Source of the DNA: Diadema antillarum
Lineage: Eukaryota
Assembly (NCBI RefSeq): GCF_040938485.1
Contig: NW_027272091.1
Span: forward strand, 124,001-188,000
DNA length: 64,000 nt
Direction: 5' to 3'
Both the position numbers and the translations under genes were made by a program. The notes beneath the pieces are model-generated. The model saw nothing but the letters and a program-made list of their open reading frames with translations. It was not told where the DNA came from and did not search any database. Within the stretch, counting starts at the first letter, position 1, and each line of letters starts with the position of its first letter. Shown piece by piece: positions 45,032 through 48,783 of this stretch.

Positions 45032-47259
45032 TCAAGCTTTTGTGATGATGACATTTTCCCAAATTCTCCCCATGAGAATGCGTTCGTTGTCATCATCCGG
45101 GTCGCAAAGACCAGCACCATCCGACCCAGGCTCGAGGTCCGCTCCCCTGGCTACACGGTACTCCCTCGCTAGCTCCCTGTACCTAGTCAACACAGCATCC
45201 TCCATTTCTTTCGTTGCTGTCTCTCGAAAGTGACCGACGTGGGTGAAGAAATCGATCAGCAGATTGCCCTCGGCCGAGCCCTGATCGAACATGCTGGTGA
45301 TGTCGACGGTGATTCGCTGCTCGGAGATCATGAATGGGATGGCGAGCTCATTCAGGATTCGCTTGACCCTCGTCGAGCTGCTGTAATCCTCTTCGCGAAA
45401 TTCGTGAGCATTCAGACTAGAAGTGTCTGTATTATGATAAAATTTAATGTACGTGCGTGATATCAAGATAAATGAAGCGATTATAACTGACACCAGGGCA
45501 AATTAACGCCCAGCGTGGAATTTCACTTTTAATATCCCCGGATTTTTAAACTGGGCACATCAATCGAAAGCAAATACAATGTAAATAAAGACAATAAATG
45601 TAGATCTCTACATGAGTTTGGATTCTGGTGGAGTTGATCTGAATTCCTACAGGCTTGAGTTCTTATAGTACCTTGAATGAAATACCGGAATATTGAAGGT
45701 GACGTCATCAGTGGGTGACGTGGGTGGCAGACATTTCAAATCTCATCTTTTTTAACTTAATAATTCGAATCCTGTGGGTGTTTTATTTAGCAAACTGTGA
45801 AACAAAAGTATGCATGAAACATGGTCAGAAGAGTGCGCAAAAGGAATGGGACGCGGATGCGGCAAAGGCTGCAAAATGCTGCTAATTCCAAAGTAACTTC
45901 AAGGAATTACCAGGAATATTATGACCAAATAACAAACGATGATAATAATCATCATCAATGACAATTGTCTCAGGAATGATATAATTGTTCATGTAAATAT
46001 GAAAAAATGAAAGTGATATACCTTTCAATAGGGTGGTCAGGAGAATCCCTCCTGGTGCCAGGCTATCGTACAGAAATTGCAAGGCTACACGAAGGTCCTC
46101 CACGTAGTACAGGCTGTGCACGGCAGATATAAAATCGAACTGCTGCGGCGACCCTTCGTTGCTCTGGCCACTCTTTTTCGCCATGTATTCTTCCAACGTC
46201 TCGTTGTGCCACTCGAAGTTAGCAGCTCCCGGCACAGACCAATCACCACTCGACGATTCCTTGGTGACGGCCGACTGGAACTCTTCCAGATAGACCCGTG
46301 CGGGTTCCAGGACCACGTGGTTGAAGCGGGCAAAGCGCTGAGAGAGCATGCGCAACAAGATGATGTCATACTCGCCTGATGGTTAACAAAGATAAAAGGC
46401 GAAAATGTCGTGCAAGGATTTGTCGTTACGGATAAGCAGTTGCAGACTTATGTTTTATTTTGATTTTAAACCTACATGTAAANNNNNNNNNNNNNNNNNN
46501 NNNNNNNNNNNNNNNNNNNNNNNNNNNNNNNNNNNNNNNNNNNNNNNNNNNNNNNNNNNNNNNNNNNNNNNNNNNNNNNNNNNNNNNNNNNNNNNNNNNN
46601 NNNNNNNNNNNNNNNNNNNNNNNNNNNNNNNNNNNNNNNNNNNNNNNNNNNNNNNNNNNNNNNNNTGTTCCGGCGCGCTTGGGTATGTGTCATCTGCGGG
46701 GACCTTCGGGTAGCAAAAACTGTTCCCAGCATTTCACAAGCAATGCTTGCCCAGAAAGGTGGTACATTTGTGTACAGGCCCTTGAGCATGGTCAAATGCA
46801 GTTCCGGGTGAATCGCGGGTATTGTCCGCAGAGGTTCGAGAACACCAGTATAATAGGATGCTCGTATAGCGGCCAAATCTCGCAGGCAACTCCCATGCAG
46901 AAAACACGCAGTTGCACTTCGCAATGCCTGCATGTCGTCCGCAACTAGAACATAAGTTCAACGTAAGCAGCACACGACCAGCAGGTATAAGACGAACACG
47001 AAACTAGCCAAAATCCTAGTACATGTATCTGCCCGCAGAGAATTATCCCGCGTGCTGGAAAATCCCTACACGCAACAAACCCGCATAGCTTGCCCGGAAA
47101 GGTGTGACAGAACGTTTATAATCGATCTAACATTTTTTGTTCCCACAAGTTTTTGATCAGAGAGGCAGCATTGTCCTCTAGTAATGCTCATCTCATTTTT
47201 GTGCGGATTATCTTTATTACATCAAGATAATGAAGTTTGCTAAAATGGGTCGTCATTGA

Positions 47260-47297
<38 letters not shown>

Positions 47298-48783
47298 GTC
47301 GTGGGCATTTAAGACCAATGAATATTAAAGGTGTGTACAACTGGTCGAGGTGAAGATTCAGCTTTTAACGTTTTGTGAGATATTCAGAAACCACTCTATG
47401 AGATGTCAAAGAGCATGCAGTTCTAAGGGGTATCAAAAGTTTATTCGATGAAAATCGGTTTTGAAATGGCTGAGATGTCCAAAAACAAGGTGAAACAAAG
47501 AGATACTAATAAAGTTGGGGCATGTCGCCTTTTATTATTAGCACTTTTTGGGATATCTCAGCCATTTGAAAACCTATTTTCATCAAATAAAAGTTGAATC
47601 CTTTTTAAAATTACATGCTCTTTCATATTTCATAAGAGGCTTTTTATTATCTCACTTTGGAATGTTCAAAACATGAATCCCTACCTCAACCAGTACTGTA
47701 CAGTCCCTTTAATATCTAATACAAATACATTAGAAATACAAGGACTCATATCAATCTGTTTGATTTTACCCTATAAAATAAACCTCGTAAAAGTTTAGAT
47801 ATGTCAATGACTCCTCTTATCTATATTGGTGCAAACAATATTTGACGTTGACATTATAAGGGCTATGACATTGTCGTTTCCACAGATTTGGTTATCTTGG
47901 TTATCTTGCCTATTACTGCACTTTAACAGTGGGAACGTTATGCTAAATACTCCCTCCAGGTGCTATAGTGTTGTACATGGTGACATCGTAGGCCTACATT
48001 ATTATTTGGGGGGCTAAACTCCGAGTATATAAGGCAAGAACAAGGGACATGGACTGGCTTATGACGTGAACAACAACCATTTTACTACAATTACTGTATA
48101 AACATGTGCGGGGGTGGGGTGGTGGTGGTGTTGGCTTTTCACAAGTTTCAAACCTAAAAGGAAAATTCAACGCAAATGATTTTGTAAATTCAATGATTGC
48201 AGAAATGTTGAGAGCACACATGAGTGCGTCACTGAGCCGATAAGAGCTGTACTGCATTCATGCATATAACTACATTATACACAGCCCAGTCGCTGTTCCA
48301 CCTCCCTGTTCGCACGGCGTCTGGTCGGGATGCACAGATAAGTGACCTCCCTGGCATCATATACTGAATACAGTAATTAGTATCGTAATTCCATCGTCAC
48401 TGTTTTGGGAATATTTCACAATTCGCGGTGTGACCGAGACTAACACTCCCCACCTTCCTGTAAACATAACAGCTCCTTCTTGGTACTACTCTAACAGCGT
48501 CGTGGCTGCCGTAGTAGAGGCACATTTAAGGTCCATAAGGCACATCAAAAAAAAATGCAACGTCGACGTATTCAACTGAAGAATTAAGCTTACCTGTCCC
48601 GCTCCCAACCCCTAGAGACCGAAGGGTGTGATCCGAGGGACGGATCTCTCCCAACTTGTGAACGACAAGCGCCGGAAAGTTTTCCTTGGCCCATTGCTGG
48701 TCACTGGTATGCTTTCCAGCCTTCTCCACGAACACGTCGTACGCCTTGCTGTAATGAGCGAGATCTGCTGTCAAAATGTTCAT
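45032..48783 (-). CDS. HNMT: HNMT-like methyltransferase copy d, intact (312 aa); exons 48783-48594, 46375-46022, 45426-45032
   Basis: Open frame 190+354+395 nt with canonical GT-AG junctions and the same motifs as copy c. An N-gap lies inside intron 1. Confidence 0.92.
47329..47708. mobile_element. Kolobok-like MITE in HNMT-d intron 1
   Basis: TTAA on both flanks and imperfect TIRs aggtgtgtacaactggtcgagg / cctcaaccagtactgtacagtccct. Confidence 0.7.

Follow-up and report, generated by a model that had tools for sequence, protein, structure and literature searches.

The window considered here is a 64,000-nucleotide stretch of Diadema antillarum DNA (NCBI RefSeq assembly GCF_040938485.1, contig NW_027272091.1, positions 124,001 to 188,000 of the forward strand, numbered below from its first letter), in which tblastn with the spliced product of one gene, copy d, finds five colinear three-exon copies (a to e) of a gene resembling histamine N-methyltransferase (HNMT), arranged in tandem and all on the minus strand. 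Copy d, the gene under study, looks functional and appears to belong to a tandem expansion of the Diadema lineage, part of a large non-vertebrate HNMT-like family. With a probability of about 0.6, its product is predicted to be a methyltransferase that does not act on histamine and that has an inherited, family-wide substrate pocket. Every polar ligand contact named in the literature on the human enzyme (Glu28, Gln143, and Asn283) is replaced in the array, by Lys, His, and Arg, respectively. The homologs surveyed suggest that “HNMT” is probably a misnomer for the non-vertebrate group as a whole and not for the array alone.

Judged by sequence comparison and a predicted structure, the array proteins are true HNMT-family class I S-adenosylmethionine (SAM)-dependent methyltransferases, with the SAM motifs intact in copy d. 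Among solved structures, exon 2 of copy d taken alone matches human HNMT best (E = 7e-7), and Pfam assigns it only to the generic Methyltransf_23 family (PF13489, 31.5 bits against a cut-off of 27), while exon 1 alone and exon 3 alone, searched against PDB sequences, gave nothing or a weak HNMT match only. Full-length copy e aligns in phmmer with human HNMT 1jqd (residues 4-257 on 8-259, E = 1e-20), a profile of 46 family members matches the whole human chain (1jqd, 1-290) at E = 9e-75, and hhalign gives a probability of 99.95 for the array clade against eight vertebrate HNMTs. Similarly, an AlphaFold2 model of copy e (mean predicted local distance difference test, pLDDT, of 90; predicted template modeling score of 0.88) retrieved human HNMT structures as all of its top five Foldseek matches, including 2aou and 1jqd, with template modeling scores of 0.80 by query and 0.86 by target; the next fold scored near 0.5. 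Copy d carries motif I (GVGSGTG) and the acidic Glu in VLEP (Glu87, equivalent to human Glu89), and both Gly60 and Glu89 of the human SAM site are retained in copies d and e. A first-pass annotation of this DNA, made from the letters alone, had held that the SAM-binding elements are kept in all copies save motif I in copy b, and the translations bear this out (GVGSGSG or GVGSGTG, VVEP or VLEP, AVHSLYYV).

The substrate pocket was mapped by three methods, namely phmmer against 1jqd, the family profile against 1jqd, and hhalign against the eight vertebrate HNMTs, with human numbering taken from the PDB alignments and the alignment run via copy e. All three place Lys24 of copies d and e at human Glu28, His150 at Gln143, and His244 at Glu246. 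A further change, absent from the first-pass annotation, puts Arg302 of the last strand at Asn283 in the profile alignment and in MAFFT, an alignment that is bridged by a Glandiceps protein with the segment FFNNTLETII, which is similar to both sides. The literature on human HNMT describes Glu28, Gln143, and Asn283 as hydrogen-bonding ligand contacts, Glu28 lying at the bottom of the histamine cleft, and has Trp183 and Phe243 lining the histamine site; Glu246 is invariant in the vertebrate sample (8/8). The polar lining of the pocket, made up of two carboxylates, an amide, and an Asn, is replaced in the array by Lys, Arg, and two His, and the strict polar contact set of a vertebrate-type HNMT (EC 2.1.1.8) is absent from copies d and e.

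The aromatic part of the pocket is largely preserved. Five of its seven cage residues are kept in copy d (Tyr15, Phe19 as Tyr, Tyr146, Tyr147, and Phe243), the two that are not being Trp179 and Trp183; Tyr11 and Tyr15 of copy d correspond to human Tyr15 and Phe19, and Tyr153 and Tyr154 to human Tyr146 and Tyr147. The W179-W183 region is nine residues shorter in the array by all three methods, Trp179 being replaced by Leu186 in copy d and Trp183 being deleted or standing opposite Ala, depending on the method. Much of this had been anticipated. The first-pass annotation had read position 28 as Lys in all five copies, and the five motifs (SNKYTS, SDKYAS, SGKYAS, AGKHTS, TGKHTS) are indeed found; aligning the spliced proteins to HNMT, as it had proposed, puts Lys, not Glu, at the E28 site in all three alignments. 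The same three alignments concur with its readings of Gln143 as His (AVHSLYYV), of Glu246 as His (DFxTH), and of a missing W179/W183 helix in a protein about 9 residues shorter there, and the literature on ligand contacts matches its statement that E28 and Q143 contact histamine in the human enzyme. The positions of Lys24, His150, His244, and Arg302 are invariant across paralogs that differ by up to 0.73 synonymous substitutions per site (dS) and in the orthologs from D. setosum, and these residues are, therefore, not there by chance.

An exhaustive search seeded with the Diadema exon 2 gave 129 cluster representatives at E <= 1e-3 among 1.84 billion, and the matches with names came from echinoderms (urchins, sea stars, a brittle star, sea cucumbers, and a crinoid), hemichordates, and amphioxus. 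No vertebrate HNMT came up in a word search that used the family alignment, and the vertebrate HNMTs were gathered with a sturgeon fragment (P0062) as the query. In the resulting alignment of 83 near-full-length non-vertebrate (ambulacrarian and amphioxus) homologs and 8 vertebrate HNMTs, the vertebrate proteins uniformly (8/8) have Glu, Gln, Glu, and Asn at human positions 28, 143, 246, and 283, a set (E/Q/E/N) found in 0 of the 83 non-vertebrate homologs. Position 28 is Lys in 32/83 and Arg in 17/83 of the latter (49 with either) and Glu in 9/83; position 143 is His in 65/83; position 246 is His in 40/83 and Gln in 16/83; and position 283 is Arg in 21/83. The complete Lys-His-His-Arg (K-H-H-R) set of the array is also found in the unlinked D. 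antillarum genes P0011, P0019, and P0162, in the Strongylocentrotus purpuratus “histamine N-methyltransferase” XP_030841538 (P0149), and in L. variegatus P0165, while L. pictus P0005 has R-H-H-R and hemichordates also show K/H/H.

As homologs from echinoderms, hemichordates, and amphioxus most often have K/R28, H143, and H246, the pocket of the array was inherited and not made within the array. The first-pass annotation had taken the rewiring as particular to the array, and this part of it has to be given up: the K-H-H-R set extends to unlinked Diadema, S. purpuratus, and Lytechinus genes, and K/R28, H143, and H246 are the majority states in the 83 homologs. It had also raised the question of whether these residues are standard in invertebrate HNMTs that methylate histamine; they are standard in invertebrate HNMT-like proteins, none of which is known to methylate histamine. 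On the homologs sampled, the novelty moves from the array to the family. It is also more likely that the vertebrate E/Q/E/N pocket is the derived state, because amphioxus proteins have His143 too and the E/Q/E/N set is found in 8/8 vertebrate versus 0/83 non-vertebrate proteins. Only the helix deletion is confined to the Diadema array clade, the segment being of full length in the sister protein, L. pictus P0005, and the acidic residue opposite Asp193 is possibly also array-specific. Some echinoderm paralogs have an acid at position 28, including S. purpuratus XP_781932.1 (P0116), holothurian P0058 (Glu), and brittle-star proteins (Glu), and an amine substrate would be more readily expected of such proteins. 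Among the echinoid paralogs sampled, Asp28/His143/Glu246 in S. purpuratus XP_781932.1 is the most HNMT-like pocket charge.

A maximum-likelihood tree places the array in the non-vertebrate clade, as a clade of its own (Shimodaira-Hasegawa-like approximate likelihood ratio test support 100) that is sister to L. pictus P0005 (99). Within it, the D. setosum proteins P0132 and P0131 are the partners of copy c and copy e, respectively, indicating that the duplication separating c from a, d, and e is older than the split between D. antillarum and D. setosum. The ratio of nonsynonymous to synonymous substitution (dN/dS) is 0.22 between d and e (dS 0.27) and 0.23-0.25 when c is compared with either of them; pairs that include copy a give 0.29-0.33. 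The reading frames of c, d, and e are all intact, and orthologs resembling each of the three are present in D. setosum. The dN/dS of 0.22-0.25 and this orthology indicate that selection maintains copies c, d, and e.

If copy d is a non-histamine methyltransferase with the family's pocket, SAM would be bound as in HNMT and the acceptor would be a small molecule other than histamine, which, as a cation, is unlikely to be preferred. The exchange of two carboxylates for Lys, Arg, and two His would favor an acceptor that is anionic or zwitterionic, for instance a derivative of an amino acid or of a heterocyclic acid, and His150, predicted to lie beside the SAM methyl, could act as a hydrogen-bond partner or general base. 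The Tyr/Phe cage that is kept, together with the acid opposite Asp193, would leave room for an imidazole amino acid; thiohistidines and pyridine acids as acceptors are speculation. The composition of the pocket makes it plausible that the acceptor is not histamine and may be anionic or zwitterionic. The first-pass annotation had argued from the shared charge reversal to a different, possibly acidic or zwitterionic acceptor, and the replaced polar contacts and the missing W179/W183 favor the first half of this claim, whereas the acceptor class is a prediction from charge. The canonical histamine pocket would then most likely be a specialization of the vertebrate lineage. A more sweeping version, in which the whole non-vertebrate HNMT-like radiation methylates anionic or zwitterionic metabolites (histidine- or thiohistidine-type compounds, pyridine carboxylates), histamine methylation via E28/Q143/E246/N283 is a vertebrate innovation, and the invertebrate-deuterostome “HNMT” arm is an annotation artefact, is tentative and rather doubtful.

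Several points weigh against a non-histamine enzyme with an inherited pocket. The equivalence of Asn283 and Arg302 is less secure than the others, as it comes from MAFFT and the profile only and hhalign ended at residue 266, and the loop at about 181-198 is aligned with low confidence and has a pLDDT of 61-70 in the AlphaFold2 model. With the cage largely kept and an acidic residue opposite Asp193, an imidazole amine could still bind. The survey was seeded with the Diadema exon 2 and could have missed an echinoderm protein closer to vertebrate HNMT, and the polarity of the pocket change was inferred without a cnidarian or acoel outgroup. No RNA run with copy d was found, and the word-search matches included no protein model of it.

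The array proteins could instead be true histamine N-methyltransferases with a different chemistry, His150 taking over from Gln143/Glu28 at the ring nitrogen and the Tyr/Phe cage, with the Glu/Asp of the KEDY loop, holding the ring and the amine. The conserved cage residues and the acid opposite Asp193 would suit such an enzyme, as would the fact that sea urchins have a histaminergic system, of which several papers take these genes to be the catabolic arm, and that the 83 sampled homologs offer no alternative candidate with the vertebrate pocket. The sea urchin and comparative neurotransmitter studies assigned the histamine-inactivating role purely from the gene name. Against a true histamine enzyme, Lys24 at the floor of the Glu28 cleft and Arg302 in place of Asn283 add two cations that should disfavor a cationic amine. 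W179/W183 are lost, a chicken HNMT-like protein lost its histamine activity, which its authors ascribe to amine-binding substitutions (PMC3660329), and the echinoderm paralogs with an acid at position 28 (S. purpuratus P0116 with Asp, holothurian P0058 with Glu) would be the better candidates, so that this explanation is considered unlikely.

It is more improbable still that the array itself rewired its pocket after duplication and so gained a locus-specific new substrate. Two features restricted to the array clade, the deleted helix and an acid conserved opposite Asp193, are consistent with such a history, and so are pocket-lining sites that differ between c and d/e (25 Tyr/His, 186 Arg/Leu, 196 His/Tyr). 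Yet K28, H143, H246, and R283 are common to unlinked Diadema, S. purpuratus, and Lytechinus genes, and K/H/H to hemichordates; being shared with unlinked paralogs and other taxa, the charge reversal predates the array. As a unique rewiring, the array was rejected on the 83-homolog survey. Least probable is that the array is decaying duplicated DNA and that copy d is non-functional or unexpressed. The nonsense codon of copy a, the loss of motif I from copy b, the failure to find an RNA run with the gene, and the absence of copy d from the annotated proteins retrieved fit with decay, but the frames of c, d, and e are intact with consensus splice sites, dN/dS stays at 0.22-0.25 over a dS of 0.27-0.73, and D. 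setosum has their counterparts. For c, d, and e, a pseudogene reading was rejected on dN/dS and orthology.

The non-histamine enzyme with an inherited pocket thus remains the preferred reading, and its value lies in the family-wide question, the distinctiveness of the array itself being weaker than the first-pass annotation had held. Should the 0/83 result hold, another way of clearing histamine would have to be sought in these animals, and dozens of expanded, selectively maintained echinoderm and hemichordate methyltransferase genes would have substrates yet to be found. Copies c, d, and e, three intact paralogs differing at pocket-lining sites, provide a handy panel for substrate finding.

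The positions of the gene copies, of the exons and pocket codons of copy d, and of other local features are collected in Table 1. Copies d and e are 88% identical. The splice model of copy e equals, residue for residue, the NCBI protein P0130, “histamine N-methyltransferase-like [Diadema antillarum]”, and that of copy c equals P0133 from the third residue of copy c on, bar one substitution; these two matches validate the splice models and, with them, the use of a GC donor at intron 2 of a and c. The donor of this intron is apparently GC in a, b, and c and GTATAT in d and e. Another NCBI model of copy c, P0134, sidesteps the GC donor with a loss of 25 residues, the full form being found in P0133. 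The NCBI annotation names copies a, b, c, and e HNMT-like, and the 10 other long open reading frames of the window have no Pfam match. D. setosum P0131, the ortholog of copy e, has 6 extra residues (DTSSYTDTSSVT) where exons 2 and 3 meet, precisely within the loop that is shortened; they are either a small tandem duplication or an effect of annotation.

Table 1. Gene copies, parts of copy d, and other local features of the window (positions in the 64,000-nucleotide stretch; descending order for minus-strand features).
Feature	Position	Strand	Description
Copy a	20734-15165	minus	tblastn and splice model; in-frame TAG
Copy a codon 142	17315-17313	minus	TAG; CAG in the other copies
Copy a intron 2 donor	17191-17186	minus	GCAAGT
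Copy b	28370-25522	minus	tblastn and splice model; motif I coding segment deleted
Copy b deletion site	28197-28260		exon 1 segment encoding SLGVGSGSG (motif I) missing
Copy b intron 2 donor	near 26291	minus	GCATGC
Copy c	38449-34633	minus	intact, 311 residues; GC donor at intron 2
Copy c intron 2 donor	36108-36103	minus	GCATGT
Copy d (gene under study)	48783-45032	minus	intact, 312 residues
Copy d exon 1	48783-48594	minus	codons 1-63 and 1 nt; N-terminal helices, Tyr11, Tyr15, Lys24, His25, motif I GVGSGTG
Lys24 codon (human Glu28)	48714-48712	minus	copy d
Copy d intron 1	48593-46376	minus	GT..AG, 2218 nt as assembled; holds assembly gap and repeats
High-copy segment	47312-47713		in copy d intron 1
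(GT)n microsatellite	~47262-47294		in copy d intron 1
Segment adjoining the gap	46666-46950		contig depth moderately up
Assembly gap	46483-46665		wholly inside copy d intron 1, 108 nt upstream of exon 2 acceptor
Copy d exon 2	46375-46022	minus	Rossmann core: GEYD, VLEP (Glu87), WHNET, SAVHSLYYV (His150, Tyr153/Tyr154)
His150 codon (human Gln143)	46118-46116	minus	copy d
Copy d intron 2		minus	GT..AG, 595 nt
Copy d exon 3 and stop	45426-45032	minus	substrate-binding subdomain: shortened loop (Leu186), DFFTHVGHF (Phe241, His244), acidic insert, RIWENVII (Arg302)
His244 codon (human Glu246)	45241-45239	minus	copy d
Arg302 codon (human Asn283)	45067-45065	minus	copy d
Copy e	56872-53172	minus	intact, 312 residues

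The codon split between exons 1 and 2 of copy d (exon 1 ends in phase 1) is completed by exon 2 (GVGSGTG|EYD), as in copy e, and the 312 codons of d and e align with zero gaps. As exons 1 and 2 join in phase and are colinear with those of e, the reading frame of copy d is independent of the assembly gap in intron 1. At the DNA level, the alignment of d with e covers exon 3, intron 2, and exon 2, reaches 46409 (34 nt past exon 2), and resumes in exon 1; there is no alignment across intron 1, and the scaffold join over the gap, therefore, cannot be shown by comparison with e. Indirect support for the linkage of exon 1 and exon 2 comes from the D. setosum partial protein P0136, in which an exon 1 of the AGKHTS type is joined to a d-like exon 2. 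Four sequencing runs were found whose contigs pass from exon 2 into intron 1, and since they cross the exon-intron border, these runs represent DNA; they are probably from related samples or paralogs (95-99% identity). The intron also holds the (GT)n microsatellite. Over the high-copy segment, contigs of three runs reach a summed depth near 10^6 with many internal joints, compared with tens to hundreds at the exons in those runs, and this segment looks like a very high-copy short interspersed repeat. In the segment adjoining the gap, the contig depth is about 250-1100 and both strands have open frames that continue into the run of N; a repeat fragment is more probable here than a methyltransferase exon.

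Two of the copies are damaged. Copy a, with its in-frame TAG, is probably a pseudogene, and copy b, which lacks the coding segment of motif I, is probably inactive or a pseudogene. The NCBI models P0001 (copy a, 259 residues) and P0135 (copy b, 298 residues) use alternative splicing to bypass the damage, and the models may be artefacts. P0133, which differs from copy c by one residue and starts two residues later, lies on another D. antillarum contig (4.88 Mb), and several further D. antillarum paralogs are present as near-identical pairs on two contigs, which suggests that the assembly keeps alternate haplotigs.

Genes of this kind have been noticed before. Drozak et al. 2013 (PMC3660329) noted that sea urchin and acorn worm have hnmt-like genes in tandem, and another paper noted numerous similar sequences in Lytechinus. 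A literature search returned no published assay of an invertebrate family member and no paper on their acceptor pocket. Among characterized systems, human HNMT (1JQD/1JQE/2AOT-2AOX) shares with the array full-length homology, the two-domain fold, the motif I glycines, Glu89, the WH.ET segment, the LYYV tyrosines, Tyr15, Phe19 (Tyr in the array), and Phe243, at about 20% sequence identity. The array differs from it at Glu28 (Lys), Gln143 (His), Glu246 (His), Asn283 (Arg), and Trp179 (Leu), by the loss of Trp183 in a loop nine residues shorter, and at two SAM contacts named in the literature, Ser120 (Leu) and Gln94 (Tyr); it also has an extra, low-confidence and variable acidic insert of about 20 residues before the last strand.

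The chicken HNMT-like protein is a carnosine N-methyltransferase that is not active on histamine (Drozak et al. 2013, PMC3660329), as the first-pass annotation had stated, and it sets the precedent for a change of acceptor on this fold. Like the array genes, it belongs to an HNMT-family paralog group in tandem with relatives; unlike them, it comes from vertebrates and shares about 50% identity with HNMT. Its loss of histamine activity was put down to amine-binding substitutions, with Tyr147 to Arg and Cys196 to Gly highlighted among the histamine contacts, and it has an N-terminal extension of about 30 residues (PMC3660329). Compared by this description, the array lacks the features of the chicken type: Tyr147 is kept (Tyr154), there is no extension, and the changes are at 28, 143, and 283 instead. 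Close counterparts are also the “HNMT-like” proteins of ambulacrarians and amphioxus (S. purpuratus XP_030841538, L. pictus XP_054755091, D. antillarum XP_071477818, Ptychodera XP_070561801), which have K/R28-H143-H246 as in the array, with R283 in echinoids, and are frequently organized in tandem or multiple copies; the array clade is set apart from them by the absence of the GW..LW helix segment and by its own C-terminal insert.

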